Notes: generated by a model not told the origin, from the sequence alone. DNA of 29,288 nucleotides from Caecitellus pseudoparvulus (GCA_965644315.1 CBFFRQ010000173.1:1-29288); one strand, 5' to 3'; shown: positions 1 through 23,100, counted from the first letter of the stretch. A program made the numbers and translations.

Positions 1-340
1 TAACCCTAACCCTAACCCTAACCCTAACCCTAACCCTAACCCTAACCCTAACCCTAACCCTAACCCTAACCCTAACCCTAACCCTAACCCTAACCCTAAC
101 CCTAACCCTAACCCTAACCCTAACCCCAACCCTAACCCTAACCCTAACCCTAACCCTAACCCTAACCCTAACCCTAACCCTAACCCTAACCCTAACCCTA
201 ACCCTAACCCTAACCCTAACCCTAACCCTAACCCTAACCCTAACCCTAACCCTAACCCTAACCCTAACCCTAACCCTAACCCTAACCCTAACCCTAACCC
301 TAACCCTAACCCTAACCCTAACCCTAACCCTAACCCTAAC
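1..340. repeat. Telomeric repeat array (TAACCC)n = (TTAGGG)n on the minus strand; left chromosome end
   Basis: About 56 tandem TAACCC units from base 1, perfect except one T>C variant at 127; ends abruptly at 340 (…taaccctaac|tttccaaatg). Confidence 0.98.
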
Positions 341-419
341 TTTCCAAATGTCAAGCTAATCACAAGTTGTGAAGTGCTAACATTGCCTAATCCAGGCGCT
401 CGTGCACCCAAGTGTGGTG
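330..419 (+). repeat. 90-bp perfect direct repeat, copy 1 (11 bp telomeric + 79-bp element 5' leader)
   Basis: Identical to 8172-8261 (offset 7842); first mismatch at 420/8262. Confidence 0.95.
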
Positions 420-561
420 CTGCACAGCGCCAGTGCATGCATCGGGTGCGCGGAGTGAGCAGCAGCGCGATTTCCGCACGCCACGCTCCCCACGCGGTGC
501 GAGTCGCGGCTCCGGCTGGACGCTCGCACCACTGCTTGCCCGAGACCATTGCTTCATCATC

Positions 562-2743
562 ATGTCATCCAAGGCCAGCCGAGTCCTCGGCGTGCTCGCT
601 GCATGGACCAGTGCCTGGAGCAGCGTGGTGTCAGGGCGGCCACGAACAGGCGTGCTGACTGACATGTCACGCCGAGGGGCAGCTCCGGACTTTCCAGCTC
701 GGTGGCATGGACATTGACTGCACGGATGGCCAAGATGCATCATTTTTCGTCCGCAAGTTGGGCTTGGCATCTTCGGAGATGAGCTGGAGGCCGAGTTTCC
801 TGGAGCTGCTCCTGTGATGGTGCGCGCCAATTCCGCGCTGAAACAATCCGCACCAGGGCAGACCATTCTCCTTGTCACGCTGCCGAGTGACGGTGAAGGC
901 CCCGCCATTGCCAAGTCCCTGCGCGTTGCTGCTGCTGTGCGAGAAGACTTCATCATCATGTTGAAGGGGGGCGGCTCTGGTGGGCGTGGTGTACTCCAAC
1001 GCCGCGGCAGTTCACGTCAGAGCGCGCCAGGGTCAGCGTGATCGCCCCTCCCTCTGTAGTGAAGGTTGCTCTTCAGATCTCTGAGGCAGCAACCAACATT
1101 GCCTGTGAGAGTGGGGATGTGTCCAAGATCTTGAAGCTTGGTCCATGCCCACGTCACCGCCTTGCTCACTCCATCGCCAAGCGTGCTCCAAAGCCTGTCG
1201 GACACTCCCGTCTCTCCAGAAGATGAGCGCCTCTGTCGACAAGCTGCCAAGCCACACTGCCCAGCCAAAGCCCCTGCTGAAGAAAGGCGGTCCCAAGAAG
1301 AAGGAAGACACGGAGGGGCAAACGCAAGCCATCTGACAAAAAAAGAGCTCTCCTCCTCGGCGCTTTGCTGAACTGTTCAAGGAGGGCGTCGTGACTACTT
1401 CGCCCCACAGCGCCCCCTCCCCTCCATCTGCACCCGCCGAGTCGCCACGTCCAGGCCAAGCTGCTCCTTCCCCTGAACATGTCCCTCTTCCGTCCACCAG
1501 AGTCAAGCGCCCGACCTTCAGCAGATGGGACTCGCCCAGCCCACGCAAGGGACCTCTCCTCCCGTGTCCCCGACAGCTGCTGCGGCACTATCGGGCGGCG
1601 GGGCACAGCCACCTCTTTGCAAGCTCCCGCAAACACGGCACCCACTACGCTGCTAAAACTTGCTGACTGCGGTCAGCCGACCAGCACGGCTTGGACAGGC
1701 AAACCTTGACTTGGGTTCCCCCTTGCAGCAACTCCTCGCCTCTGCGCACGCGTTCCGCAACAAGGACCAACGACACTGTGTCCAGGCCTGCTTTGAAACA
1801 GCAGCAGGAGAGCCACTCCTTCAATGACGTGGATGACCTTGTCCTTCTTCAACACGCAGCCACCATCCAAGCGGCGCAGACATCCTTCTGTGCTGTGGCA
1901 GAAGAAGAGCAAGCGCGCGTCACCCTGGCACACCAGACTCGGAGGTCCATGCTGTCTGTGGAACAGAACCTTCCATGCCGACCACCGAGCAAGACAAGCT
2001 TGACCTCTTTCAATCGTTCCTGTACCGACATGCGCCTGATGATGCAGCGCACTCACCAGTGCCTGTCCACCTGTGCTCCTCCCTGGTCTTCATCCTCTTG
2101 CTCACGCGTATCAACGAGGGCCGATCGGGAGCTTGAAGGCGGCACAGTGTCTGGACACTGCCTGGTCGATGTCAAGGCAGAGAAAGAGATGGCACCTCCG
2201 AGGCAAAAAGTCTTTTTTTTTGCTGGGGTGTACTTCTGCGTTTGCTCTCAGCTTGGTTGACACCGGAGGTGGTCTCCCACCTTCAGCTCATTGTCGTCAA
2301 CGCTGAGAAGTCCACACTTGTACTGTGGAACCCTGTCGAACCCTTCAAGAGCACCAACATTCCAATCGACGACCGCCTGAACACCATCGACTCGATGGGC
2401 ATTGAGTCTGTGTACCGTGTCTCATCCCTCCCCGCTGAGTGGCAAGCCGATTCCCTTCAAAGACAGAGTGCGGCTGGCCATGCTGTCCCTCAGGTCTGAC
2501 TTTCCCCACTCCCGTTCGTAGCTGAGGACGAGACTGCCCGCTCCAAAAGACTCTCATCACTGGCAAGACAACACGGGTGTACCTCCCTGTAGGCCGCACC
2601 ACGCGCCAACAAGCAGCTGCCGATGAGAGAGAGCCGAAGACGGTTGACCCCATACTGTCACTCATCCCAGCATCTGTACAAGTCGCCGACCAGATCAGTA
2701 GCGATGCACCCCATGCCCCTGTCGGCCGCGGGAAGACACATGA
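562..2743 (+). pseudogene. Element 1 ORF1 (multiple frameshifts): unknown N-terminal domain, basic KKK..TRRGKR patch, Pro-rich linker, putative cysteine-protease domain
   Basis: Frame fragments align in order with element 2 ORF1: PRTGVLTDMSRRGAA/PRTGVFTDMPRRGAA, IACESGDVSK/IACQSGDVAK, CVQACFETAAGE/CVQACLETAAGE, LLQHAATI in both, HLQLIVVN..LVLWNP/HLQLILVD..LVLWNP, GRTTRQQAA/GRMTRQQAA. The catcATG start context is conserved at 562 and 8406. The 3' end is approximate. Confidence 0.8.
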
Positions 2744-5700
2744 CACTCGCACTTGCTGCTTGGAGTAATTGCGCACGGCTCCTGCGGCCGGTGTGTCCAC
2801 GATCGTCGTCGCCTGTCGGCCAGTCTGTGGTGCAGTGCGTCGTCCATGTTGGCACTCTGTGTCGCAGAGCCTGGGGTGCACGGCCTGCTCGACACGGAAG
2901 TCACGGGCCTTGAATGCTTCTCCGCGCCCAAGCCACGCCTGATCGGCCTGTCGGGCGGAGTGAGGTTGCCTTGCTGCTTGACTCGAAGACTCCAATGGCT
3001 CAGTGATCCCGGGCCTCGACGTTGATGGTCGCTGCGCAATTGCTTGCATCGGATCCCTGCAAGCCCACAACCCATCGCCATCATAGCCACGTACGTACCC
3101 AACTGGCACTCTTGGCAGCGAAAAGAAGCCAGTCGCTGATCCGGACACGAAGCTCCCGTACCGGCAAGAGGCTTGGCGGCAGCTTGAGTCTGCTGTTCAA
3201 CAGCGCCCGCCCTCGCCCACATGATTACTGTCATCATGGGTGACTCGAACACTCATCCAGGTGACGAAGGGGTAGGCACGTGGGGAGCAGATCACTGGGA
3301 GAAATCCGGACCGGCATTCCCGAGCCCACTGAAGACATCCTGCAGATGCAGCTCCTCTGCGAGCAAGGCCCACACTGATCCCAGCCGGACTTGGTGGCCT
3401 GCCAACGCACAGGTATGGTCGGGCTCTGGACCAGCATCCTGATGACTGAGGACCTCCACAGCATGTTGAGCAGACCACTGCACATCACAACAACGTTCTT
3501 CCAGCGGGACGAAAAAGAGTGCCGCCTGGACTAGCTCCTCAGTGACCATCATCTTGTTGCAGCAGAAGTCCGAGTGAAGCCCGCCAAGCGAGTGTGGAGG
3601 CATCATCCAAGAGCCCCCATGTACGAGGCGGTGCCACCCTGGCGGACCTCAGCGACAGAGGCTGGGCTGGCAGCGCAAGCGATGCTTCGAGGATCCCTCA
3701 GCTCGCGTGGCCACCGCGCTCCAGACAGGGCAGCGCCGCCCCGAGCCTATCCTTTTCTCAACGGTGCTATCGAAGCCGCCGGCTATGGACACACATCGCA
3801 AGGCCAAGACCCCACGTGACCCTCTGCCCCAGCTGAAGATGGACATCAAGGCGGCCAGCGGGCTCCAGAAGTCCATGACTGCACGCGCGTCCAAGCTGCG
3901 GAAGACCATTGCCAAGCTGCACCGGAAGCCTGCCAGCTTGGCCGCCCGCGGTCGGCGTCCTCAGCCGGGGCCAGCGCCCGTGCCATCCGAGAGGGAATCT
4001 CCATGGCCACTGAAGAGCGGCTACACGCCACGCTTCAATGCCGCAAGGATGTGCAATGCGGAAGTGCACGAGGCTTGTGAAGAAGAAGCGACATGTCACT
4101 CTGCCCAGGATCCGAGCACGCTTGGGGAAACTCGCTGTCACGGATCCCTTCACCGCCCACCAACACATCAGCCGCCTGTCAGGTCGGGGTCGTCGAGCCC
4201 GTCGAGCTCCCATCAGGTCCGTGAAGTCCATGCAGGGAGCAGCTTCATCCCCTCCCCTTGATCTGCAGTGAAGGAGGAGGTTGCCAAGCAGATGTCTGGC
4301 ATCCTGCGTCCACAACAAGCCCAGGCCAACATCGCTGGAAGTACGGGCTGGCAAGGTTCCTTCCCTCAGCCCAAGAGTCCTTCACCCCGCCAGTGACATG
4401 GCTTCCCTCCAAGAAGCAAGTCAAAGTCCTCCACTGGGATCACTCAGCTTGCATCGACACCCAGGCTCTGGCAAGTTCCAATCAGAGCATCACTGGGAGT
4501 ATGCCGGGCCAGGCTTCCAAGACATCTACTCCCAAGCCGTCATCCAAGCGTTGCAACACTTGGCACCTGCCCGCCAGACTACCATGCAGGCATTGGGTCA
4601 CTCATCCCCAAGAAGACGAGTGAAGCCGGGCGCGCGCCTCGCACATACCGCTTGATTGTATGCCGCCCCCTCCTGCAGCTCTTCTTCTCAGTGGCCGCTG
4701 CATGCCTGGAGTCCTGGATGCAAACATGGGCAGCTCGAAGCGAGCAGGCTGGCTTCACTGGACACCGCAACACGCATGAGCACATCTTGGCTCTCCAAGG
4801 AGGTGATCGGAGGCCACCTGCGACAGTCAACAGCGCCAGTGCAAGTCCTGGTACTCTTCGTGGACTTCCGGGGGAGCATTCGACTCTGCTGAGCCACGCA
4901 GCCATCACAGAGATCGCCTGAGGCTGCCTCCCTCCCTGCGCTCACTCCTGGCCGTCATCCAAGGAGTACATGTTCCGAGGCGACGGTCGTGCCAGTCAAC
5001 ACGCGCCATGGTCTTTGTCGCCCCTTCCTGCGCATCGCTTAAATGGTGTCCCCGCTGGAGGAGCTCTGTCCCCCCTCCTCTTGCTGGGTTGCGATAGATG
5101 TGCTGGTCGCAAGAGGCTCCACGAGATGCCCCTCCAAGGCATCCAGGGAGTGGGCATCCCAACACCAGCAGGCCATGTCACCCACACCCTGTATGCAGAC
5201 GACCACGGCTCGCATCGGCAATCTTGCCCGCCACGGCCTGGCACTGAATCTTCGTAGAGGTGAAGGCCATCGCTGCCCGGGTTGGCCTTGCCATCAACCC
5301 GTCGAAGGTCCGGGGTCATGATCCCCGCCAACTCCGTGCGAGAGGCAGCCGGACACCAGTCAGGTGAAAGGAAGAAGCTGGTGGGAAGCGCTCGGCTGCC
5401 CTCAAAGCGGGCAGCATGCTGAAGGTTGCTGCAGTCCATCCAACGGGTGGCGAGTACGCCTACCTACTTGGGTGTGCCGATGTCCGAACATCCTGCCAAG
5501 ACCCGTGCACTTACCCTGCAACAAGCTGGGCTTGCTTGCATCCAGGCCGGGTTCACTGCGGGCGCTGCTGCTCAGTGCCACCTGGCTCGATGCGCAGCAG
5601 CGGCACCTGGTTGGGTATGCCACTGTCACGTCAGCCGCCGACCATTGCTGTCCACCCAAGCCAACAGTTCCCTGCTTCCGCTGCGCTGACGTTGACCGCG

Positions 5701-7331
5701 GCGCTCGCCCTCGCCTTGGACGGGACCCAAGTCGGCCTCGCAGAGTGCACTCATGCGCCCCCACAGCTACGCCAAGCTGGCTCTATGCGGTCCTCGCCTG
5801 CCCACATCCGCTCCACGCAACTGCGGACTGGGATGTTTGTCAAGGCTCTCCGGATGCTGCACTCGGACACCCCTCTTGCCCGAGCTCTGTGCCTGACCAT
5901 CCACGCAGGCCCTTGACCTTATGCCTGCTTCGATGTCGACGACCGCCATCGTCGACACCATTGCTGATGGAGGTCGACTCCGGGGCTGCCAGTGTCCCTG
6001 CTCCGTGGGCACTGCATGCCCTCTTGGACCTCTGGCTTCATGGGCTGCATGCCAGACCTTGCACAGCTTCGGCTTGCATGTGCACCTGGCTCTGAGCATG
6101 CTGCCACAGCCCTTGCCCAAGTCCTTGCCGGACTTGCGACCACCCCGGGCCTCCACAGGTCTGCGGTGGTTGGGGTGGCCGCCAGCGAGACGTCGTCCAT
6201 GGCCGAACCCCCGGCCTTCTGCGGCAGACACCCCCTGGGCCCTGCGTCGCCAAGTCCTCGTCGTGCATCTTCATGTAGCCCCGGCAGTGCCAGGTGCAGC
6301 TGCCCACTACACTCACCGACAGCCGAGATCCCCCAAGTGCAGAAGCTCCAGGCCGCATCGATCTCTGGGCCTGGTGCGCAGCACTTCGTGTGGCTACATC
6401 CACTACTGCCACACGGGGTGAACCCCCTCTTCTGGGTCTGTCCTGATGACAGGCCCACCAGAGTGATGGTCCATCACTTCCAGACCTTACAGCTTCTTCA
6501 TGGGGGGGACAGTGCCACTCTGTACGGTAGCTGTCCGATTTGCGGGACTCAACACCGACACGTACAGCTGCACGTGCACATCCTGCTGCACTGCACCCAC
6601 CACGAACTCACCATGGCACGCCAGCACACGATGACCAAGTTCAGAGAGCCGGCCCAGCAGGTCAGCTGTGCCCGAGTGCCGCGGGCCAAGTGCAGTGCCT
6701 GCCCATCCCCCTGGTTCTAGCCACGCCCCTCCTTCGTGCCCCCGACCCAGAGCCGCGAAGCCTGCGGGACCCCGAGGTCCTCCACAGGCTCCTGCTCTGC
6801 GGGCAGTGGGAGCCTCACCGGTGGGGGCTGGCCGACGAAGAGCAGCTTGTCTCTATGAAAGAGGCGGCTGTCCCCTTCCCACCCCCACCTCGTCCACCGT
6901 TGCTGGGTCCTTGCCGTGTCCGTGCCCCAGCTGTATGGCAGAGCATCCTGCGCAGCGCGGTCGAGTTCACAGCAAAGGCGTGGCGGGTCACAGTCACTTA
7001 CATAGCTGCGTATGACCGATGCCCACCACCTTTGCTGTCCAGAGGCATGCTGAGTACCTGGTGGGCAGTACATGGGCGCAGGGCGCCGCTGCTGCAACCG
7101 CACGGCAGCCAGTGCGGTCAAGCGGCCACGCGGCACACGCGCAGGCCCCGCACTCGCCGCAGGGCACGCACCTTTTTCCCCTGGCCAAGGCTGGCCAAGT
7201 GCCGTCCACGGAGGGCAAGGTCCAGAGGGACTGCCAGGCAGCACCCCATGGGGCCTCAGCCAGCCCATGCAGACACTGATGGTGAGGGGGAAGGGCCCGA
7301 TGGTTCCTGTGAAGAGAGCGAGGGGGAGTAA
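2740..7331 (+). pseudogene. Element 1 ORF2/pol: AP-like endonuclease + reverse transcriptase + CCHC zinc finger, broken by many indels
   Basis: APE: MTLALAAW(S)N at 2740, ALCVAEP, SGGV, IAIIATYVP (~3074-3100), VIMGDSN (GD at 3239-3244), SDHHLV (3541). RT: LIPKK..TYRLI (~4601-4660), QAGF..RNTHEHI, VLFVDFRG/AFDS (~4850-4885), GVPAGGALSPLLL (~5045-5085), YADD (5192-5203), GLAINPSK (~5285-5310), YLG (5465-5473). CCHC: CPIC-x11-HILLHC (6532-6594). Confidence 0.9.
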
Positions 7332-8171
7332 GGCGGAACGCAGGCGTGCGAGGCGGGGAGTGGAACAGCCACGCTTGTGGCCGGGTCCACCCTCCCCGAG
7401 TGTCCTGACGTGGTGAACTCTGTGTGAAGCTGTGGTGATAACCACGGCAGCCCGAAGCAGATGCCCAAGACCTTACCTTTTACTTGCTACATAGCCTGCA
7501 GCGAGTAGCGGTGGAGTGAGCAGGAGCGTGCGTCGGTGCCGCGGCGCGTGTGCAGCCGCAGTGCTGCACGGCCACCGCAGCCCGGATGGCGGCTGACAGA
7601 TGAAGCAAGCTCACTCACCACGAAACCAGGGCGTGACAGGCCGAAGAGATCCCTTTTCCTTTCTGTATCCCCCTCGACGTGCGCGCGATGCGCTCTGGTG
7701 GCGCGGGCGCGTGTGTGCGCACGGGTGCTGGTGTGCCGATCGAATTCCCGCACCGCGCACCCGGCCGAGTTCCCGCGCAGAGGGCGGCTGCACACACCTC
7801 ACAGAAGGGGCGCAGAGAGGCCTATGAGGGCCACAGAGGAGGTGGGTGAAGTGAACCTGGGTGCATGATCTGTTGTCAAGACTGCGCGGATGCCTGGGTG
7901 TGCTCTGGTGTGCCCCAGGTGTCTGGCGCTGGCGGGAGCAAGGGATGAAGTGTAGCGGAGGAGGGCCAAGATGATGAATTGGAGCGGGCAGGGACCTGCC
8001 CTAGCAAGTGGCGGCAGATATAACGGGTGCAAGCCTGTGTTTGTTGCGAATCCGCGCCAAGCGGTAGCCGCTGTGGCGTCCTACATGTGCAGAGGTGCAT
8101 TGTGGGGCGCCCGTGTGACGCTCAAGCTGTACGGTGCCAAGCTGTGCCGAGGTGAAATGCATTGTGAGTTG

Positions 8172-8261
8172 CTAACCCTAACTTTCCAAATGTCAAGCTA
8201 ATCACAAGTTGTGAAGTGCTAACATTGCCTAATCCAGGCGCTCGTGCACCCAAGTGTGGTG
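8172..8261 (+). repeat. 90-bp perfect direct repeat, copy 2; junction between element 1 and element 2
   Basis: ctaaccctaactttccaaatgtcaagctaatcacaagttgtgaagtgctaacattgcctaatccaggcgctcgtgcacccaagtgtggtg is identical to 330-419. Confidence 0.95.
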
Positions 8262-8405
8262 TTGCACAGTGCTTGCTGGTTGGGTGGTGCGCACCGGGGC
8301 GGGGTAGTGCGAATTCCGCACACCATCGCACCGTGGCTCCCAGTTTGCGCCCTCGGTCGGGGCATGCACCTGGGATCGACATCAAAAGCATCATTGACAA
8401 GCATC

Positions 8406-10489
8406 ATGAACGCCCAAGTGGATCAAGTCCTGGGGGTCCTCTTCGTGGAGGGGTGCCTGAAGCGCAAGCAAGTGCTCGGCCCCAGAACAGGTGTCTTCAC
8501 TGACATGCCACGTCGGGGTGCCGCACGCACCTTCGAGCTTGGAGGACCCCTGCCCAAGACTGATCATGATAGTTCATCTTCGGCACGGGACATGTGGCTC
8601 GAGGTCTATGGGGAAGCCGCCGAACGGCTGATCCCAGGGCTGAGTGCGGAATTCGGCAACGCCAATGCGGCCCTGCGCCAGGGACCCACCGGATCGCCAA
8701 CCATCCTCGTCACGCTCGGAAGTGAGGGTGATTCACCAACAGTGGCACGTCAACTTCGCATTCTTGCTGCTCAAGAGGACGACTTCGCCATTCGAGTCGG
8801 CCAAGGTGGGTTCGTCGCCGTGGCCTACACCAACACCAAGCAGTTCGCATCGGCGAAGGCGAAAGTGAAGGTGAAGGCCCACCCCACCGCCATCCAAGTG
8901 GCCCACCAAGTGACCAAGGAAGCAACCGAAATCGCCTGCCAGTCAGGTGATGTTGCCAAGGTCATGTGCCTCGTTAGGTCCCACTTCGACCATGGCCCCG
9001 TGCCAGCCCAAGCCGTCCGTCCCAGTGTCAGACAATCCGTCCCCTCCGAGGGTGATGCACCTGTCGACACCAAGACACCATCGACCTGGACTGACACTCA
9101 GCTCGACAAGGCACCGAAGAAGAAGAAGACCCGTCGAGGCAAGCGAGGAAAGGGCAAGTCAGCCGGACGATCCCTCACCTTCGAGGACGTCTTCATCAAG
9201 AACGTCCGGCCACCTGCACCTCGACCAACCTCACCACCTGCCACCCAAGGCTCACCCAAAGATACCGTCACCACCCCTGTGGTGCATGCCATGTTGCCTT
9301 CATCAAGGGTGCAGCGGGGCGTCGACCGCAAGTGGCCGTCCCCCACCCCGTCGGGCGAGGCAAGCCCCGAGGTGCACCGGTATCGGCCGTCTGCAGCAGC
9401 AGCATGGGAGGTGATCACAAGGGTGGTGCCTCTTCATGACAGTGTGCGGACACCCGAGCACCTGGCCGAGTACCCCATCAAGCCTGGCCCTCTGGCCGAC
9501 CTGCTGTCATCGACCCACGTGTACTCTAACGTGGGGGGCGGGCCTGTGTCCAGGCCTGTCTCGAGACGGCAGCAGGGGAGAGGGTCTTCGAGGCTGGGGA
9601 CCTCCTCCTACTCCAGCATGCAGCCACCATCAACGCTGCCCAGCTTGCCTTCAAGCACATGGTCAGGCAGCTGGAGGGGGTGGTCAGTGACTCGTCCAGC
9701 TCGGACATCATGGACGTCGGCCAGAAGCCACCCTCCCCCTTCCGCTCAGACGGGCAACGGGTGGCCGTCTTCCGCAACATGCTGCACCAGCACTCGCCGG
9801 ATGACACCTTCCTGGCCCCAGGTACACCACCAGTCCTGCTTCCCGGCCTGCACCTGCTCATCGACCGCATCAACCAAGGGTACCGTGCCCCAGCCGGGCA
9901 TGATGACCTTGGCCAGGCCGGCGTCGACCCCAGCCAGGTTGATGAAGAGGGTGACCAAGAGGGGCACCTCGACGGAGTGCTGTATGCCTTCGCACTTCGA
10001 GAGGTGTGGACCGACAACACGGCCCATCTGCAGCTCATCCTCGTCGACCATGATCGAGGCAAGCTGGTGCTGTGGAACCCCGACATCCCTGACCTCCATG
10101 ACGAGCTGCCCCTGCACAAGTGCATGACCCGGCTGGCAGCCGAAGGCATCAACGTCTTGTACCGGATCTGGACCACACCCGAGGCGGGCAGTCCAGCACC
10201 CTTCCGGGACAGGCTTCGAGGGGCACTCCAGTCTCTCCGAGATGACTTCCCCCCCCTGCCTCACAAGGCCACCGACGGCACCGTGCACCCCCAGACCCTC
10301 ATCGCTGGCAAGGGCACAAGGGTGGCCATGCCTCATGGGCGGATGACCCGACAGCAGGCCGCCACCCTGGAGGCTGAGGTCAAGGACCCCCTCAAGCGGC
10401 TGGTGCCTGAAGACGGCGAGGGTCGCCTGCCCAAGGTCAAGGATGTGCCCCACATCTCGATCGGGCAGATGGGTGGACGCCTGATGTAA
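8406..10489 (+). CDS. Element 2 ORF1 protein (~694 aa if one frameshift in the G6 run at 9533-9538 is corrected); putative papain/Josephin-like protease domain in the C-terminal half
   Basis: The 8244..10127 frame matches element 1 ORF1 up to ~9535, then homology switches to the frame of 9659..10489 (open from 9530). Adding one G gives HVYSNVGGRACVQACLE, colinear with element 1 HAFRNKDQRHCVQACFE. Confidence 0.8.
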
Positions 10490-11104
10490 GTCACCTGTGG
10501 GGGCATACTCCCTGTGCCACACATGACTGAAGCTTTGTGTCGCGACCGACGCACATAGCTGACATCGGACATTGGAAAGTCCAACCCAACCTCACCATCA
10601 CCAACCCAACATCGATACCAACACATCAGGACTCGGCTCAGTGGAAGGGGAAGGCACTTGCAGCAAGATCTGTGAGGCCGCCCCCAAACCTGAGCCGAAG
10701 GGACAGCCGGGCTGGGTCGTGTGCTTGCATCTCAGCAACACCCAGTCCGTGTCGAGTCCATATCCTCCAGCCCACACCGCCACCCAAGCCAAGCAAGTCG
10801 GGTCTCCACCCCTGGACATCGGACCGAGACGGACGAGACTGGACTGGACGGACAAGACAAGAGTGGACCGAGACCTGGACCTACACCTCAAGACCATCCC
10901 ACCGGGGCGGGCGCTGAAGCGCCAAGACAGACGGCGACTTATACAACGGACACGAGTCTGTGCTAGTCGCAAAGCCGTGCAAGCGGTGCCGTCGTGGTGT
11001 CTGTGTCACTGCATTCTGTTGTGGCGCAGGTGGCACCACATGTCCAAGCCCAAGCTGTACCATGATGTAGCCTGCATGGAGGCAATCTGCAATGCATTGA
11101 GTAG

Positions 11105-11114
11105 CTAACCCTAA
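11105..11114 (+). repeat. Interstitial telomeric decamer CTAACCCTAA at the junction between element 2 and host DNA
   Basis: Seen directly; same terminal motif as element 1 (8172-8181). Confidence 0.85.
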
Positions 11115-13882
11115 GTGCTATCCCCTCTACACCTCTTGTTCGCATGTTTGTCAGATGCTTTTGGTCTGCCCGAAACTGTCTCTGGCTTGTGGCTTTTCGG
11201 ATTTGTGGCTCGTACTGCCACAAGCACACTCGTACTTGTGGATGCAGTGTCCTGAGAACTAGCAGACACTCTCTGGGCGCCTCCGTGCCTACTTGACATC
11301 TCCGATGCATCCACAGCAACCTCCCCATCACCTAGTTGGGGTTCTGAGCACATCGGGTTCCCAACAAGTTGCTGCTGCTTTGATTCGATTCCTGCCTCTG
11401 GCTCTTTACCAATGGGCTGTTCTCCACAGCAAGATGCTGCACAGATCCCTACGGATCCAGATTCTGCCTCACCGATCCCCCACTCCACGTGCTTGCTTCT
11501 GCGAGAAGCAGACTGTACAATTTTCCATAGCTGGGCCGCCTTCTCTTGCAGCGGTGATGGGAGACCAGCGAAAGTGCCACCTTCCAGCCTTCCCCCACTC
11601 TTGCTCAACAAAGTCTGCGAGGCTGTATCCCCCTTCGTCGGACTTCCAGCAGCTTCAGCGGGTCCTTGACTTCTCTTTGCTTTGTCCAGCTCATGGCTTT
11701 CGCTCGCCAGCGCAGTGCAATGCGTCAACAGTTCGCAAACGACATTGAAGCTGCAATGATCGCACACCCACCTGAGCCACTGATCCCCACGAGCGCGAAC
11801 GTCAATGGCACGACCACCTTCAAGCCGCAAGAGCTCACGTAAAACAGCTACATGACCCCGCTTACACGTGAGCCGGAAGCCGCCATCATCGCCCGCATGC
11901 ACATCGATTTCCCTGTGCCCCTCCAACGCCAGCAGCTCCTTCACCACCTCGACATGGCCTTCTCGGCATGCAAGTCGAAAGCCAGCCTCGGACCCGAATC
12001 TGCTGCTGGCATGCACATCAACCTCGCGCTCGCCTGTCAGAGCCAGAAGTTCGCGCACGATACCGAGGTGGCCGTTGTGGCATGCCCACCGGAACCCTGC
12101 CTCAGGCCCAACCGCGTTGCTCGCGTGCACGTCCACTGCCTCATCTCCTTCGAGGGCGAGCAGCTCTTGGAGCAAAGCCACGTCGCCAGTTCGACATGCT
12201 GAAATAAACGTGGCATCTTGTGCAGCACTCTTTTGTTCCACCTGAAGTCTGGCGATGCGCATGCTCTGTGCCCCAATGCCACGAAGCCTCGCTTCGAGGG
12301 ACACAATACTGTCGCGGTCAAGTTCGCAAGCTCGACAGGCAAGAGCGTACAAGTCTGCAAAGTCGAGATTCGCATCCCTTTCTAAGCCTGACAAGGCTCC
12401 TTGCCATGCACTTGAGTCGCCGTCGCCGAAGGATGTGAACACTGGCATCGCGCCTACCGTCTCTGTCGCAGCTCCAAGAATAGCTCTTCCAAGGGACGCC
12501 CCCTTCTCTCGAGATGCCCCTCCGCCATCACTCACCCAAATCTTTGAGCAGGCACTGAGGAGCACTTGGCAACTCCCGGACCTCAAGGACTCGACAAAAC
12601 TCCCAACACTGCAAGTGCTCAGGCCGATGACCACAAAATCAGCGACGCAGGCACTGTCCACCTTCACTCCACAAGCCTCTGCAAAAGCAAGGCTTCCAAA
12701 GACCTGAGCACATAGCAACTCCTTGGACTCAAGTTCAACGTCTCCCCATGCCTCGTCTTGCAGCATTCGGCTCAAGGGCCAGCAGCGCTCGCCATGCAGC
12801 TGCACTGCCGCAACATCTCCAACACCTCGTTGGCATGACTTGAGTTCGTCTGGCAGCTTGCAACTGAATGCCACGCTTTGCAGTGTTTGGGCAAAGCGTG
12901 GCAAGCCAAAGGCAATGCGAACCGCCTCAGCTTTTGCCACGCCCCCTGCACATTGGGCAAGAGCCTCGGAACCACTCCGCAGCTGCAGAGCCCACTGGCA
13001 GAGTTTGTCTACTTCCGTACCCCCTGATGCAGCGAGTGCGACTTTGCTGCTGTATACGCATGCGTCCTCAGCAGTAAAACAGCTGAGCTCGTCTGGCAGG
13101 TTCAGATCATCCTCGCGGCGAAGGGCGTCCACATCTACGGCCCCTGCAGACCCCAGGAGTCCCTGAAACTTCTCCACAGCACAAGCAGTCTTTTCAATCT
13201 TTTTGGATGCTGTTTCGCATTGCATGCGCCCAGCCGCAGATCCACAAAGCCAACTTGCTTGTTGGCGCAAGGAAGTGACTGCCTCCGTGATTGCCGTACT
13301 TCCCGCAGCGCTTGCCAAGGAAGCATCTCCAAAGGGAACAGGTGCCACACTTCTCGCCTTGCGGTCCAACCACCACCGAGTAAGATCCGCAAGTACGCCT
13401 TCTACTGGCCCTGGTCCGGCGCGAACGCTGTTCCAAGCCTCCACCATCGGACCCCACAATGCTTCACCATCCGGCACGACACTAGGGCTGGCACTGAGAC
13501 CAACTTGATGCAGCATCTCAATCGCAGCGAAACAGCGAAATGACAAGTACTGCAACGCAGGGCACACTTCCTCTCGCTCGCGTTGTCCTTGCAGGAGGCG
13601 AGCTTGATCCAAAAGCGCCCTCCCAGCATCCTGGAGCAGACCTACCAGCTCACCTAGCCCCACTTCACCCGATTCCTCAGCAGCAGGAGATTTCCCCTTT
13701 TCGAGGGATGTCAGGCCGCGCAAGGCATCAAGGTGCTCCATCGGCCAACCCGGCAAGCATCTCAGCTTGTCCAAACCATCGAGGACTTCACGGGGCAAGC
13801 TTCCAAGAGCAGCACCCCCGCCAGCTCCCGCATGCGCCTCAGCATGCGCAACCGCTTCATCCTGTGAGGCGAAATTGATCAT
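11111..13882 (-). CDS. Ankyrin-repeat protein (frame open to ~13981; first ATG at 13882); possibly truncated at the 3' end by the retroelement array
   Basis: 954-codon ORF with about 5 ankyrin-like repeats at ~11725-12210 (FISACRTGDVALLQELL, GFRWACHNGHLGIVRELL, GFRLACREGHVEVVKELL, GFRLTCKRGHVAVLRELL, WLRWVCDHCSFNVVCELL). Stop TAG is inside the telomeric decamer. True start or upstream exons are uncertain. Confidence 0.8.
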   Translation of the reverse strand: MINFASQDEAVAHAEAHAGAGGGAALGSLPREVLDGLDKLRCLPGWPMEHLDALRGLTSLEKGKSPAAEESGEVGLGELVGLLQDAGRALLDQARLLQGQREREEVCPALQYLSFRCFAAIEMLHQVGLSASPSVVPDGEALWGPMVEAWNSVRAGPGPVEGVLADLTRWWLDRKARSVAPVPFGDASLASAAGSTAITEAVTSLRQQASWLCGSAAGRMQCETASKKIEKTACAVEKFQGLLGSAGAVDVDALRREDDLNLPDELSCFTAEDACVYSSKVALAASGGTEVDKLCQWALQLRSGSEALAQCAGGVAKAEAVRIAFGLPRFAQTLQSVAFSCKLPDELKSCQRGVGDVAAVQLHGERCWPLSRMLQDEAWGDVELESKELLCAQVFGSLAFAEACGVKVDSACVADFVVIGLSTCSVGSFVESLRSGSCQVLLSACSKIWVSDGGGASREKGASLGRAILGAATETVGAMPVFTSFGDGDSSAWQGALSGLERDANLDFADLYALACRACELDRDSIVSLEARLRGIGAQSMRIARLQVEQKSAAQDATFISACRTGDVALLQELLALEGDEAVDVHASNAVGPEAGFRWACHNGHLGIVRELLALTGEREVDVHASSRFGSEAGFRLACREGHVEVVKELLALEGHREIDVHAGDDGGFRLTCKRGHVAVLRELLRLEGGRAIDVRARGDQWLRWVCDHCSFNVVCELLTHCTALASESHELDKAKRSQGPAEAAGSPTKGDTASQTLLSKSGGRLEGGTFAGLPSPLQEKAAQLWKIVQSASRRSKHVEWGIGEAESGSVGICAASCCGEQPIGKEPEAGIESKQQQLVGNPMCSEPQLGDGEVAVDASEMSSRHGGAQRVSASSQDTASTSTSVLVAVRATNPKSHKPETVSGRPKASDKHANKRCRGDST

Positions 13883-14967
13883 GAGATTGCGCTTGTCGGT
13901 GGAGCAGCTCTGGCTCTCACGTGCGTGGCGCAAACGCAAGTGCTTGTGGTAGCGCGCAACGTCACCGTGGTTCAATGCACTTCACTGTCGCGAATGTACC
14001 TACCATTGGAACGTGATTGCAGCAGCAGCTAAACCAATCTCAGATTGGAGTGCAAGCCTCCAAATCGTGCGCGCAGAAGATTGATGAAGATCCGGAGTGC
14101 TGGAAGGGTGAAGTTCAACTTCCGCAGCCCACCGATCCCACTCATGCAGTCAAATCAGGCGAGTCTTTCAACTGTAGACAAGAGATCAAGCTTCATAGAA
14201 GTGAGATTGCAAGTCAAAGTATAATACAATGGGGCCTTGGCTGGCGCCCTTCATAGCCCCCCCCCCCAGGATGCACATTCAATCTCAGGCGGTTTACGTT
14301 GAACTTGAGTTGCCTGGACCAGAACCACGCTTCCGAACCCCAGAGGCATAGAACTGATCTGCGAACGCAAACCGAACATGTTTTCGAGCATTCAAGCTCA
14401 CTCCGAGACTCAATCAGTTTGACTTGCTGCTCTTCGATCTTGCCACTGTTACGCTGATGCTGCGTGGCGTGTTGAAGCACCACACAACACCATTCAAACG
14501 TTTGTTCGCAACCCAGCCTTGGCATATGAAGAGCATCAATAACGGGGCCCGGTTTCTTAGCCGTGTTAGTCTTTCCATTTACCCCACGCAAGCAGGTGCA
14601 ACTCCATGACATCGAGTTTAGCGCAAAACTCAACGAGAGGCACTTTGACTCGCAACACAAACCACACCTGAGCCGAACTCGTAATGCAGCGCTTTCCCTT
14701 CTTTAAAGGCACGCTTAAACGTGCGTATAACACCACCCTTACCGTAACTCACCTGCTTGCCCCTTCGAGCTGCCACACTTTCATCACAACACTTCACAGG
14801 AGTCACAGCGAATCAACGCACAAGCGGAGCCAACATTGACTTGAGCACCCCCTTGGTCCTTTCAACTGCGAACTCCATGAGCTTGCGCCCACGTGGAGTG
14901 TCCTGCAGCCTGAGAGGCTGCCGGGCACTTGGGCTTGACATACCCTGCCTTGTCAAAATGACTAGAA

Positions 14968-17149: not shown

Positions 17150-20100
17150 TCACCCTTGGTGTCTTGGGAGCGCGATGGTCGGTCGCGCAAGCGCAACAGT
17201 TTCGCCTCCCCACACGCACAGTGGGTCAGGGAGGGGCATCGCATGCGGTACTTCCTCGACCTCCACTGCAACGTGCTTTCCCAACTCCACTGTTTCAGGA
17301 TCCCACTCTTCGTCCATCCAGTCAGCGTCGTGCAGCACCAGGATGGAGTCGTCTTCTGGAGCGGGAAGCCCCACCGCCGCGTAGCAGGCCGCAACTTGCT
17401 CCGCAAAAGTCTGAATCGGATCTAGCTGGACCGCAACGGGGCCAGCAAGCACTTCGCGAGAACCTAAATGAGCATCGCCGGCCAGCTGCATGTTGCCTGC
17501 GTCCTGCTCTTCAACACTCACCACGTACAAGGCCACATAGCTCGCCTGCCTTGGACGAACGTGGATGCTTTGCAGCACCACGCCAGACAGGTCACTGCCA
17601 GGCGCCTTGGTTCCAGCAGAGGTGCACAATTCCACGACGAACTTGTCTCTGGAGGATGCTGGAACGTGCACCAAGTCGAAAATTGCCCCCACGTCCACCC
17701 GCACGCGGATGTCGAGCTCGATCTCTGTTTGCGCTTCGAGCTCCCGCCCAGTTGGGCCGTCGCCAGGCAGCCCCAGCAGCAGCAGGGGAACTGTTTGCAT
17801 GCATGCATCCGTGCTCACCACACCCACACTGAAGCCTTTCTCGCTCGGCGAGCGCAGGGCTGTCTGGAATGCAGCAAAGTTGGCTTCGTTCAGGGCCACT
17901 GGAGTCGGGATGCTAGCCCATTTGAGCATGAAGCAGTGCTCACTCGGAAGGCTGCGCTTCTTGAGGCCTTTCAGCACTGCAGCTTGGAACTCTGGGATGG
18001 ACTCCAGCATGCTATCCTTCAGCCAGATCGTCTTAGGCGTTGACGTACTGCGCGCGAAGCAGGAGTCCGAGCTTGGGTCACTCACATCAAGCAAAGTCAG
18101 GGAAAGATTGATGCTTCTGCTTTCCTGGCCAGCACTGCTTGGCGCGTGCTGCTCAACAAGGTCGTCTACGCCGTTTGTGAACTGGATCACCTTGAAGTCT
18201 GACAATACATCACGCAGGTCACCATCCAAAGCTTCGCGGACACGCGAAGCGAGGTGCATGCTTTCGTCGTCCAGCGTGCCGCAGGCCAAGGCAGACGCCT
18301 TCAGGTGCGCCAAAGCATTGACCACATCTTGCTCACACTCAAGCGGCATTTCACCGGGAGACTGACCGATTCGACGCATCGGCTGTTCTTTCTTGGCCGC
18401 TGCCCCAGCCTGTGGGTGTCCACCGCCAAAATGTGAGCTTCCTCGTCCCCCAGTGCACATTGGCTGAGGCATGGCCTGCCCTCCGCGTGACTGCGCTTGG
18501 GGCATTGCTTGGCCTCCAGTTGGCTCCAAGCGCGCAGCTTCCCTCTCTTGCTCCCGCATTTGCTTGTGTGCGTCCAACTTCAGAGCCTCATCCGCTGCCA
18601 AGGCGTGACCGATCGGCGCACTGTCCAGGAAGTCTGGTGTGCTTGCGTCTGACGCAAAGCGGAGCTTCGGAGCATATTTGCCGCGCGAGCCCATCCCAGA
18701 GCCGTCACCCTGCTTCAAGTCTTCCGCGCTCTGCAAAATCGTGCGAAGGCGTTGAGAAAGTTGCTGGATGGTATTGGTGACAAGGACAAATGCGCCTACA
18801 AGCACGCCGTCGGCGGCCGACCCGTCATTCTTCTTGATGCCCAGCAGAACATGAGCCATGGAGATCTTTGGCTTCTTTTCTCCGTACAGTGCTGCGTGAA
18901 CAAACTGGTTATCGGCCAGCAGCGACTCTGAGGAGCTTTGGGACAGCCACGAGACGGATGCTTCCGCGAGTGCGTTCTTGAGGTGCTGCAGCATGTCCAG
19001 ATCACTCTGGGCACTCTTTGTGTCACCTTCAGCAACAAGCTCCTCAATTGTGCGAAGACGATTGTCCACTTCTTCCATGATTGACGCTGGAAGAGCGTTC
19101 TCAGCCGCCTCCTTTTCCAGGTGCTTCTGGAACTGTCGCACGAAGGACCTGTAGCTCCCCACTGCCAGTCGTCTGAGCCTTCTTGAGGTACCGGACACTT
19201 TCCCGCTGAACAAGGCCTTGTCGAGGCTGGTAGCTAGGATGCCTTCCTCGAGCAGCTTCCTCACGGAATCTGTGGCGGAGCGCAGGAGTTCGCGCCACTG
19301 CTTGTCTGTGAGTGACGAAGCCATAATCTTGCTGTCCTTCCACTCAACACCAGCTTCATCGCAGAGCAGCAGGGCTTCTTCAAGCAGGGACTGCTCCTCG
19401 GACACTTCAGGAACTTCGGGAACTTCGGGCTCTTTCTCTGCATGATCTTCATGTTGGTCAGACCGCGAACCCTCCTTGGACTCCGTTCCCGCAGGAACAT
19501 CCAGACCTGGCTTGACCTCGCTGGGCGCCGCTTGCCCACTCTTTTGCTTGAACATAAAATCCTCTCCCAAATCTGACACCTCCAACAGCATTTTCCCACG
19601 CATGACCAGCGGGAGGAGGAAGCGGGCCAGGTTCTCAATGTCCACGCTCACGTGCCCAGCAGCAAAGGGCTGCGAGTCTGCGGAGGCAGTTGTCCGTGCT
19701 GCGAGCCACTTTGCACGCGCCTCGTCACTGCTCAAGCGAAGCTTGTACTTCTCCGGCAGGAAAACATCCAGTGGCGGCTCATCAGCCCTTGGTTTCGGCA
19801 CTCTTTGAGCTTCGTAGCTGAAAGTTGCCCCACATCCACGCTTCTTCCCGCTCTGCCTCTCCGCTTCAAGACGTGCCGCAGTCTCGGCGGCACTCTCATG
19901 CGAATGCTGGCCACAGACGCCATCGTCACAGTACATCGTCCATTCCATGAGGCGCTGGCAGTCTGGGTTTGGACAGATGCTGTACTTTTGCTCATGCATG
20001 AGCTGCTGCGTACTTCGCCCTTCGTCGAAAGCAGCTTCTCGCTCCTGCTGATCAAGAATGTCGGCCTCCTCCAATGCCTTTGAGTCGTGCCCGGGTTCCA

Positions 20101-23100
20101 CATCGTTGTACTCCACATCCGCTTCCCAGCGCAGGAAGAAGGGAATGAGTCGGCGAAGCTTGTCCACGAGTGAGAGAGGGGCGCCTTCGCCTTCTGCCTG
20201 ATCAGCGTAGGGATCGACCTCCCCGGTGTGCATGACAAGATCACGGAACGAAACTGCAGTGCTGGCAACGTGCTTCAGCGCGCGACTGCCATGTGTTGCT
20301 TCCAGCAAGCACCCTCCTCGATTGATGCCAGTCAAGGCTGTCATCGCTCTCAGCTGCCTTGTTGCATCCAACTCCATCATCGCGTTCTGAGACTTGACAA
20401 GGCGCTCTCTGAGCATGCGCAGGGGCAAAGCTCTCTCCATTTCGCTCTGGGTGAACGAAAAGCTCAATACATCGCTCACCATGAGCTGCTTACAGCCGTC
20501 TTCGTTGCCGGTGGAAAGCCTGGGAATGCCCTGCTCGAGCTCAGCCTGGTGGCCACACACAGCTTCGTACATGCCAAATGTTGCTTGCAGCAAGTTCCAA
20601 CTCTTCACAAACTCGTCAAGCTTCTTCCTGCCTACATCGACCGTCACTTGATCAAGCATCTTTCTAGACAGCGCATCCACCACTGGCAACTCCCAAGCTT
20701 CAGCCTCACTGACCTTGCCTGCGAGCTCCTCATTGCACCACTGGTAGAACGACAGCATGACGGGGATGTGGGTGGCGAAGTGCAAGGAGTTACCGTGCTG
20801 GCCATCTACAAGCTCGTGGAGCACCGCGCCTGCCAGGAGAGGCCCAGGCAGCTCCATTCCCTCTTCCGCTTTCACCTTCGCATCGCCGGCAGCAGCTTCT
20901 AGTCCGAGAACAAGCTGTGTGGTCGGGCTTGTCAGCCAGTGGGCGCAGCGGTGGCTCTTCAAGCCGGCGGCACAGCGACCGAGGGCGGGACGCAGAGCCA
21001 ACACTTTGGAGCTGCAAGCCTTAACAAGAGCGACCAATTTGTCGTGAAAGTCGTCAGCAGACAAGGGCGTCGAGACGAACTCCGCACACACAGCTTTTGC
21101 TTCCTCTGAGCTTTCAGCAAAACAAGCCAAGTGCCAGGCCTCCAAACCCAACTCCTTCAGAACGCTTTCATGTGCCAGAACTCTGGTCAGGCGGTCGTAC
21201 CCCCTCTCTGAGCCTGCGATGTGCGCCATGACCACTGCACCCCATGCAGGACTGGCCCCCTGGAGCCGTTTCATTGCTTCCTTCACAGGCCGTGCACGAA
21301 CACTTTCGTGATCTGGATTCGATCCAAGCATTGCAGCGAGCAGTTCGCAGAACACCAAGCTCTGTGCAGCAAACCTGGCCTTGTCCAGGGGTGACCGCGC
21401 ATCCGCGTGTCTGGAGGACAGTACTTCAGCGGCCGCTGGCTCCAGCGGGCATGTGTTTGTGGGTCCGATGCGAAGGACGTGCTCAGAAGTGTGCTTCGCA
21501 AGCATCCACACGAGCAAGTCGTAGGAAGTATGGGTCTCAAGATGCGCAACCTCCCACCCGTACAGCGCTGCAACCTGGCGTGACGGAGCAATACAGAGGG
21601 CAGTCGGCATGAACGTGGCACTGCCTGTCTCGAACGAGACTTGTGCAAGTTGCTCACTGAAACCAGGGTGGGTGTGCAACTGGCTTAGCAGCTGCACCCT
21701 TGCCAAACATGGCAGCGCACTCAGTGCATCGTTGTTGAGCAGCTCCAGTAAGCTCTCTGGCTCCTCTCCTCCAGGCAAGGTCAAGGGAGTGCTCGGCTCC
21801 ATGAACAGGGCTGCACGGATGACTGCCTGCTTTGCTGAAACCGAGCCAAAGGCGCCCTCACAGCCAGGGAGGATCCACCGGAAGCAAGCCAGGAAGGCTG
21901 AAGACATCATGCAGCGGAATTCCTCCAAGAAGCCATCAGGGACGTCTGCAGAGAGTGACGCAAACTGCCCCAGCACAAACAGCATGGTGTCCAGTGGAAG
22001 CTGGCCCCGCAGACCAGGATCATTCGCCGCAGACCTCGTGCGGGCAATGAGCAGGCCCAGGATGCCCTCCGGGGCCCGCATGAGAACTTCAGACATGCAC
22101 ACCACCTGGACACACTTGCCAAACAACTGCTCGTCATGGCAAACCCCTTCTGCTGTCCTGCACGGCCCTTGGCGGGCAGCAGCCACCCGCCCCAGCCACT
22201 CACACATCTGCGACTCAGACTCGGGGCCGATATGTAAGTCCTCGACTGCCGCTTGCACCGCGTCCAGGATTCGGCCAGCCCCACTTGCAGCACCAGAAAC
22301 AGGAACAGCGGGAGCAGCGCCCAGTGATCTGGAGCTGTACACAGAGGCGATGGCCTCGGAGACAAAACGAGTCAAGGCTCTGTGTCGAAGGAAGAACGTC
22401 AGTGGAACTGACCCAGGGAAGATGTGCTGGTTGGCTAATGCCCTGACTCTGTGGAGCAGCTCCCCAGCTATGTGGTCAAACTCGCGGGGCATCATTGGCA
22501 CCACGGCTTTGGCGAAGCCCTGCAGATGCCGCCCCTCACTCACGAAATCTGCATCGTCAACTTCCACAACGTTGCAGTACAGCTTCAAGAAATCGCGGGA
22601 CAGGAGAAGCATGAGCTCGTCCCGCTCTTGCAGGAGCTCAAAACAAGGTTTCATGTGCTCGAACCCAAGCTGCACATCACCGTCAGCTGCGAGCAAAGAT
22701 CTTGCCAGTGCGAACTGTCCCTCTAACCCCTCAACACGCTGCTTGCAGGCGTCAGACACAAGCTTCAAACTGCGGAGGACAGTGAAGCCGAAAGGAAGCT
22801 CAGCAGCGGCTGGAACAACTGGAGAGGGCACTTTCTCACGGCCTTGCTTGCGGGACACGCTTGTCAAGGACACGTGCCTGCCGACTTCGATGTTCAGGAC
22901 GCTCTTCACCGCCTCAGCTGCGAACTCGAGCAGCAAGGGCGATGATCCTTCAGCACGCAGCTTGCACAAAGCCTCGAAGCCGAAGTCTCTCGCCGACCGA
23001 GCCAGGAACGCCTGCACCATGCCAAAGCTCAAGTCCTGCAACCGTTTTCGAAGGTGTACGACCATGCTCTCCGTCATTGCCGAGCTCCACACACCCTCAG

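Follow-up and report, generated by a model that had tools for sequence, protein, structure and literature searches.

Telomere-specific retrotransposons are central to ideas on the relationship between telomerase and retroelements, and as a kind they are already known. As of 2023, the retroelements described as inserting into telomeres comprised SART/TRAS, GilM/GilT, Zepp, MoTeR, Tx1-1_ACar, Athena and the Drosophila HTT elements, and the lineages hosting telomere-specific retrotransposons were few, namely insects, Giardia, Chlorella, two fungi, an anole lizard and rotifers (PMC10088271). The FoTeRs were added in 2025, and no telomere-specific retrotransposon of a stramenopile was found in the literature. 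Here, we analyzed a contig of the stramenopile Caecitellus pseudoparvulus (GCA_965644315.1, CBFFRQ010000173.1:1-29288; contig C173), the whole stretch of 29,288 nt being referred to as the window, in which two elements, A and B, lie behind a terminal telomere tract. This chromosome end was very probably built by a lineage of telomere-repeat-specific retrotransposons without long terminal repeats (non-LTR) and capped by telomerase repeats, and the lineage, its domain architecture and its tail are new. The genome offers a stramenopile example of a long interspersed nuclear element (LINE) with a single open reading frame (ORF), an endonuclease of the apurinic/apyrimidinic type (APE), a probable papain-like domain and a telomere-complementary tail without poly(A), existing beside telomerase, together with a protein-coding partner under selection that lacks the reverse transcriptase (RT), as HeT-A does.

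The insect TRAS and SART elements, which belong to the R1 clade, have two ORFs, with a gag-like ORF1 that carries zinc knuckles. They resemble the lineage found here in possessing an APE and an RT, in their fixed position and orientation in the telomere repeat and in their coexistence with telomerase repeats, and the polarity of TRAS is also the same, the sense strand being continuous with the C-strand. However, TRAS and SART require a poly(A) tail for accurate initiation (PMC7265360), whereas the elements here have a telomeric tail and no poly(A), and the lineage further differs from them in its one ORF, its probable N-terminal papain-like domain, its abundant RT-less coding partner and an RT with ≤32% identity to outsiders in the databases searched. 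The Drosophila HeT-A, TART and TAHRE elements likewise form head-to-tail arrays only at chromosome ends, with their 5′ ends distal, and HeT-A resembles B as the most abundant member, which encodes only a non-enzymatic protein and depends on the RT of a relative. Drosophila differs in having neither telomerase nor telomerase repeats, whereas here a TERT gene is present and TTAGGG tracts are interleaved with the elements; the Drosophila elements also have oligo(A) ends, belong to the Jockey clade and are without a protease-like domain.

The MoTeR elements of Magnaporthe carry a restriction-like endonuclease downstream of the RT. MoTeR1/MoTeR2 and the Fusarium FoTeRs resemble the present lineage in lying head to tail and in fixed register within TTAGGG telomeres, in pairing an RT element with a shorter RT-less partner that has common termini, and in their unstable or truncated ends (10.1101/845669, PMC12857005), and MoTeR has been placed in the CRE clade (PMC10088271). 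In contrast, the endonuclease here is of the APE type and lies upstream of the RT, and the partner protein is homologous to the N-terminus of the autonomous element. The Athena/Coprina Penelope-like elements are telomere-restricted and carry at their 3′ end telomere repeats in reverse complement that are presumed to pair with the G-overhang (PMC8557442; Gladyshev and Arkhipova 2007, cited in PMC10088271), but their RT is of the Penelope type and they have no endonuclease, unlike the LINE-type RT (RVT_1) and conserved APE found here. The only precedent for an N-terminal cysteine protease in a LINE is provided by NeSL and Utopia, which are also single-ORF, target-specific non-LTR elements (PMC4640811). 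These elements, however, have a restriction-like endonuclease, target spliced-leader or U2 genes and carry a protease recognisable by sequence as Ulp1, whereas domain 2 of the present lineage matches no Pfam peptidase and its Cys...His...Asn/Asp order fits clan CA (Josephin or calpain-like). No described equivalent emerged from the protein databases or from the literature, in line with a preliminary description made from the sequence alone, which had recognised no described family with this combination.

The terminal 11.1 kb of the window is arranged in the order telomere, element A, 11-nt tract, element B, 10-nt tail and host DNA, with all parts of the array on the plus strand. The C-strand telomere tract of (CCCTAA)n (1–340) contains one variant unit near 121–127 and ends in ...CCCTAAC at the 5′ junction of element A (341–8171), a full-length copy of the autonomous family with 93–94% identity to about 18 other copies, whose frame is broken by small indels as assembled. 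The telomeric tract CTAACCCTAAC (8172–8182, 11 nt) separates it from element B, the RT-less partner (8183–11104), and through the tail CTAACCCTAA (11105–11114, 10 nt) B is fused directly to host DNA. Both elements point their 5′ ends outward, lie head to tail and terminate in CTAACCCTAA, and no A-run was found at the 3′ end of A or of B. Since 101 nt of positions 330–430 recur at 8172–8272 with 98% identity, A and B begin with the same 5′ end right after ...CCCTAAC. Outside 1–340, the decamer CTAACCCTAA occurs in the 29 kb only at 8172–8181 and 11105–11114, with a chance expectation of 0.37. The layout proposed in the preliminary description, a two-element head-to-tail array with 5′ ends toward the telomere, no poly(A) and internal tracts of 10–11 nt, was thus borne out.

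The copies of the lineage were then mapped in the whole assembly (30.6 Mb in 215 contigs). Family A is present in about 18 copies, nearly all of which point their 5′ ends outward and begin 260–830 bp from a contig end, and element B in at least 45 full-length copies of about 100% identity with the same placement. The common 5′ terminus (CTAAC|TTTCCAAATGTCAA) was detected 68 times on 48 contigs, and the common 3′ motif (AATGCATTG, 4–8 variable nt, then CTAACCC) 110 times with about 10 spacer types, therefore representing about 10 families, while reversed-pattern controls gave 0 matches. Plus-strand matches lie near contig starts and minus-strand matches near contig ends, TTAGGG tracts cap every array, and the genome holds a TERT gene (Telomerase_RBD at 7e-21 within a 1389-aa ORF), in agreement with the telomerase cap that had been postulated. 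The enrichment at contig ends, uniform polarity and telomeric junctions expected of a telomere-targeted LINE family were all found, the copies being confined almost entirely to contig ends, with a single polarity and an unvarying register. A single clearly internal 3′ motif with a telomeric tail was observed about 155 kb inside a contig (C18:155165-155186, plus strand); it could mark the site of an old fusion of chromosome ends or be a relic at an interstitial position.

Full-length copies are flanked by ...CCCTAAC (or variants ending in AAAC) on the 5′ side and by CTAACCC... on the 3′ side, and the register, ...CCCTAAC|TTTCC at the 5′ junction and AATGCATTG-N(4-8)|CTAACCC at the 3′ junction, is fixed in all the full-length copies examined. 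Poly(A) is absent from the 3′ junctions, where AATGCATTG-N(4-8) runs straight into CTAACCC. The tracts from a 3′ end to the next full-length 5′ end measure 5+6n nt, with lengths of 5 (four times), 11 (four times), 17, 23 (twice), 29, 71 and 899 nt, the 11-nt tract of the window being the case of n=1, and a few are off-register (19 nt twice, 348 and 546 nt). The 3′ tail had been taken for a fixed 10-nt CTAACCCTAA; instead, it follows 5+6n nt with a minimum of 4–5 nt. About 14 of the 19 internal tracts are ≤29 nt long, compared with 260–830 nt for the terminal tracts. Copies truncated at the 5′ end are common, each retaining a perfect 3′ end and a tail of its own, and some are as short as 14–110 nt; truncation points of A copies were located at positions 485, 1624, 2337 and 5529, and B fragments of 14–512 nt each keep the 3′ motif and tail. 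Such 5′-truncated copies with constant 3′ ends are a signature of target-primed reverse transcription (TPRT), and their upstream tracts end in any phase. On contig C150 (2904–4403), at least 1.5 kb of unbroken telomere repeat lies upstream of an A copy (L005) that starts 4.4 kb from the contig start, showing that some ends carry long interstitial telomere tracts or a further distal element.

The same architecture recurs in two independent environmental assemblies. A scaffold of ENA ERZ23495255 (L040) harbors a full-length sister-family element with 97.4% identity to the copies here (98 substitutions and 0 indels). CCCTAA repeats adjoin it at either end in the same two junction phases, and a comparison with the genome copy gave a ratio of nonsynonymous to synonymous substitution rates (dN/dS) of 0.13 over 1249 codons. 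The short-read contig k127_4434497 of ENA ERZ1643211 (L041) contains a B copy of 97% identity with a single 694-aa ORF, in the order telomere, B, 17-nt tract and 5′ end of the next element. As both contigs repeat the junctions and the head-to-tail order, the architecture is not an artefact of the present assembly.

An intact A copy (L002, from C154; L002:486-7109) contains a single ORF of 2207 aa, and the intact sister-family copy from the metagenome a single ORF of 2159 aa, so the division of A into ORF1 and ORF2 that had been described from the window does not hold. The 2207-aa ORF comprises, in order, domain 1, a basic linker rich in proline that includes the sequence KKKKTRRGKRK, domain 2, the APE, the RT and a CCHC-like motif. 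In the window, plus-strand remnants were located at 562–1158 for domain 1 (aa 20–215 of the intact ORF, no recognised family), 1702–2736 for domain 2 (aa 385–720, with a predicted papain-like cysteine-peptidase-like fold), 2777–3582 for the APE-type endonuclease, 4604–5476 for the RT and 6529–6603 for the C-terminal Cys/His (CCHC-like) motif. Pfam detected nothing in the window's own ORF pieces besides the host ankyrin gene. The naming of A as a full-length LINE with APE and RT is accordingly right for the DNA, while the window copy is non-coding as assembled and its APE and RT become visible only through the intact copies.

The RT of the intact copy matches RVT_1 (PF00078) at 2.9e-29 and has YADD at aa 1511, and its nearest PDB entries are R2Bm (8.5e-17) and human L1 ORF2p (4e-12). 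The APE, upstream of the RT, matches PF03372 (Exo_endo_phos) at 1e-5 to 2e-5, just past the cut-off; WNV, TEPG, YVPN, GDLN, LDHIL and SDH are all present in the intact copies, and a relative of 46% identity retains the N, E, Y, D-N, D and S-D-H motifs. The 602 aa C-terminal to the RT have no Pfam match and hold only the CCHC motif. In a tree with the best database matches, the telomeric RTs sampled from the genome form one clade (support 98/99) with 61–72% mutual identity, and the nearest protein outside the lineage in a collection of 5.8 billion sequences is ≤32% identical. The N-terminal 779 aa matched no Pfam family (E up to 10) and none of 1.84 billion representative sequences, a search that also missed P0001, a protein alignable end to end, which was the sole match in the 5.8-billion-sequence collection. 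The structure model of domain 1 is poor, with a predicted local distance difference test score (pLDDT) of 49. The nearest RT outside the telomeric clade is P0002 (29% identity), from a marine metagenome contig (JGI 3300009593) without telomere flanks, the 3′ region of which (~3300–3330) has a short (TAAACAGG)3 repeat, and it may be a relative with another target.

For domain 2, an AlphaFold model from a three-lineage alignment reached a pLDDT of 64 and a predicted template modelling score of 0.67. Foldseek gave no match at ≤1e-3 with this model, and its list of weak matches consists nearly entirely of papain-like cysteine peptidases and deubiquitinases. An exhaustive structural scan gave a top Z of 7.0 (calpain, Josephin, staphopain and C39), with clan CA dominating the top 50 rows, a shape search of the ESM Atlas gave Josephin at a template modelling (TM) score of 0.60, and the language-model neighbours were C48, C57 and YopJ peptidases (0.76–0.81). 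In A, B and the third lineage P0001, there is no variation at Cys26/Cys30 (CVQAC), His186 or Asn203/Asp205 (domain numbering), and the model would place the Cys at a helix N-terminus and the His at a strand start, followed by the Asn/Asp, as in papain-like peptidases. Domain 2 itself matched no Pfam family at E up to 10 and none of the 1.84 billion representatives. On the model and these residues, domain 2 is likely to be a papain-like cysteine-peptidase-like domain, and the earlier label of protease-like is supported, tentatively, at the level of the fold only, no curated peptidase family being matched by sequence.

Element B keeps only the 5′ untranslated region (UTR), the N-terminal protein and a related 3′ UTR, and its coding region stops exactly at the point where the APE starts in A, so B must borrow APE and RT in trans. 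Its first coding part, domain 1 with the basic proline-rich linker (8406–9539, plus strand), is 44% identical to A with a dN/dS of 0.25 against the metagenome relative, and the second, the papain-like domain 2 (9539–10489, plus strand), is also 44% identical with a dN/dS of 0.08, showing that purifying selection acts on the whole B protein. At a run of six G (9533–9538, plus strand), a one-base shift separates the two parts in the assembly, where the metagenome copy has another run length and an uninterrupted 694-aa ORF; most likely, the shift reflects a systematic homopolymer error or is bypassed in translation. The 3′ UTR (10490–11104, plus strand) ends in AATGCATTG and AGTAG, and its last 100 nt have 81% identity to the corresponding UTR of a family with the tail type AGTGAG, compared with 68% to that of A, for which reason the RT donor of B is probably not A. 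B is indeed without an RT, as had been described, but A and B represent different sub-lineages and are neighbours rather than necessarily a working pair.

Families with only 44–46% protein identity share conserved sequence in the 5′ 85 nt and in portions of the 3′ UTR. The conserved 5′ block (TTTCCAAATGTCAA...GTGTGGTG; 341–425, plus strand, of the B type in the window) contains the telomere-like motifs CCTAA/CTAAC and is a candidate internal promoter or 5′ cis element, while the 3′ UTR is a candidate RT-recognition element. The 3′ terminal motif of A (8156–8171, plus strand) consists of AATGCATTG and TGAGTTG, the AATGCATTG core being shared by 110 element ends. A consensus fold of the 3′ UTR over four lineages contains a hairpin with two compensatory pairs, which is suggestive only, and the 5′ 148 nt fold with a z of −2.9, the three near-identical lineages yielding no covariation. 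An Rfam scan of 1–11300 (E up to 10) returned nothing relevant; a ribozyme at the 5′ end, in particular an HDV-like one, was set aside as no Rfam family matches. Pattern scans of JGI metagenomes did not find the conserved 5′ block. A perfect palindrome, CAATGCATTG, lies within the 3′ motif of B and of two other families (AATGCATTG in A), directly before the telomeric tail (8147–8171, 11082–11104 and L040:7640-7653), and could act as a hairpin, dimer or protein-binding site.

The register suggests how such copies would be made. The RNA would end in a short C-strand telomere tail (CUAAC...) that pairs with the G-strand ...GTTAG-3′, the 3′-OH of which would prime reverse transcription by TPRT; the end of a full-length cDNA (the complement of AAC) would re-anneal to the C-strand and fix the 5′ register, and telomerase would afterward extend the new end. 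In truncated copies the upstream tracts stop in any phase, and annealing of the cDNA end is therefore the most likely source of the 5′ register seen in full-length copies. For the window, the most economical history would be a terminal deletion with a break within the ankyrin gene, then the addition of B on a telomere seed of ≤10 nt, then that of A onto the 5′ end of B with 11 nt between them, and lastly telomerase extension to a telomere of ≥340 nt. The priming 3′-OH may be provided by an APE nick within the repeats or by a chromosome end that is uncapped or very short, and the two modes may coexist. The junction statistics and the host junction favour minimal telomere seeds or template jumping between RNAs, while the conserved APE, by comparison with TRAS/SART, argues for endonuclease-dependent insertion.

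The alternative that survives best is attachment without endonuclease as the main mode, comparable to HeT-A/TART, Athena and L1 at dysfunctional telomeres, in which the chromosome's own 3′-OH would prime, with the RNA tail on the G-overhang or on a broken or critically short end, and the APE would be dispensable or otherwise used; we regard it as a possibility that falls short of being probable. Minimal tracts (5, 11 and 17–29 nt) are in large excess proximal to full-length copies, as uniform insertion into about 400 nt would give ≤29 nt about 7% of the time and the observed ~14 of 19 tracts would have a probability of ~1e-12 under insertion into a 400-nt tract. B lies 10 nt from a truncated host ORF and another array (L015) 14 nt from unique AT-rich DNA, and the endonuclease-dependent SART1 requires at least three telomere repeats (PMC7265360). 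However, the catalytic motifs of the APE are conserved across lineages of 46% identity, with a dN/dS of 0.13 for the APE-RT region, template jumping between RNAs in one TPRT event could equally make minimal junctions, and long internal tracts of 348–899 nt are also present.

A step further, the lineage, and above all the abundant B with its peptidase-like protein, might serve as a chromosome-healing system beside telomerase, with RNA copied directly onto broken or critically short ends, and B and A with their minimal junctions perhaps arising together, through template jumping in a single event, an idea that we hold as tentative and rather unlikely. If true, it would represent a Drosophila-like retroelement telomere pathway in a telomerase-positive stramenopile, with an unrelated LINE lineage and a new domain architecture. 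The window captures a truncated gene fused to an element via only 10 nt of repeat, and the lineage provides a natural case for asking about telomere nicking versus end extension, the mobilisation of RT-less partners and the healing of terminal deletions.

Spread mainly by recombination between chromosome ends, through break-induced replication or subtelomeric duplication, would leave the elements as relics, and we consider it improbable. Homogenisation could explain why B is about 100% identical on more than 40 ends and why six A copies have no substitutions, and the host ankyrin gene does have a subtelomeric paralogue; but neighbours, orders and tract lengths vary from end to end, the register is fixed at junctions, many independent 5′ truncation points are each joined to a perfect 3′ end and its own tail, and the coding regions are under purifying selection relative to the environmental relative. 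A chimeric or mis-joined contig end assembled from repeat-bearing long reads is extremely unlikely, for although the contig is only 29 kb long, its distal 7.6 kb (341–7934) carries the insertion-biased noise typical of a poorly supported long-read consensus and other copies have 0 substitutions yet several indels, the same architecture is found on 48 contigs and with identical junction phases on the two independent short-read metagenome contigs, and B and both window junctions match the family exactly.

Several points weigh against insertion by a telomere-repeat-specific LINE lineage as set out above. The window copy of A has no ORF longer than 270 aa as assembled and cannot encode the protein, and indel noise in repeats makes fine details, such as single-base junction variants and the length of the G run, possibly unreliable. 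The assembly may underrepresent long interstitial telomere tracts, and the distribution of tract lengths would then be skewed, and the RNA termini are deduced from DNA junctions only. The telomeric RTs form an isolated clade in a tree of database neighbours only and may belong to a described LINE clade, and the protease assignment depends on a model of medium confidence (pLDDT 64) and on fold matches that score weakly (Z 7.0, TM 0.6).

The state of the window copy of A was compared with that of six other A copies (C154, C196, C111, C150, C151 and C19), which have 0 mutual substitutions and 1–8 single-base indels. Relative to these, window A shows about 172–263 substitutions and about 141 indels (132 insertions and 9 deletions), with more than 100 frame breaks. 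The differences are private to this copy and evenly spread over 341–7934, and they are absent from the last 247 nt of A, which is clean, and likewise from the telomere tract and the whole of B. Noise of the long-read consensus thus probably accounts for most of the damage; an old dead relic was set aside on account of the 132:9 indel ratio, the private differences, their end 247 nt inside A and the natural divergence of 0 indels to 98 substitutions. A real component may nevertheless be present, given the B-type 5′ end and the strong substitution bias from AT to GC (T>C 85 and A>G 59 versus C>T 24 and G>A 21). The first 85 nt of window A (341–425) match B (8183–8267) at all six sites where family A (L002:323-407) differs, and this B-type 5′ end could reflect a 5′-end exchange by template switching or a mis-correction in the assembly. 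The full 2207-aa ORF is kept in only 2 of about 18 A copies, and because of residual indel errors in the assembly, frameshifts in telomeric elements are not to be read as decay without a check of the reads.

The host DNA behind the array begins with an ankyrin-repeat gene on the minus strand (11111–13975), a 954-aa ORF truncated at its 3′ end, the stop codon TAG of which lies inside the telomeric repeat. A paralogue on contig C13 (C13:964500-970500), itself subtelomeric with about 13 kb between it and the contig end, aligns to residues 5–948 with 67% identity, a value of 79% also having been obtained for it, and continues for at least 79 codons more, which identifies the window gene as 3′-truncated. 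Further inside, a 4040-aa ORF (17150–29272, minus strand) reaches nearly to the contig end, with weak AAA/P-loop matches (PF00004 at 4e-8 over residues 1141–1256; dynein-type AAA_7 and AAA_5), by which it is predicted to be a giant multi-AAA protein. A separate, dispersed RT family was also observed in the genome, with weak RVT_1 matches (35 bits) in ORFs of 436–739 aa at C142:4862-34324 and about 25 other places; its copies lie about 5.5 kb apart on C142, and the family is non-telomeric and unrelated to the telomeric LINEs.

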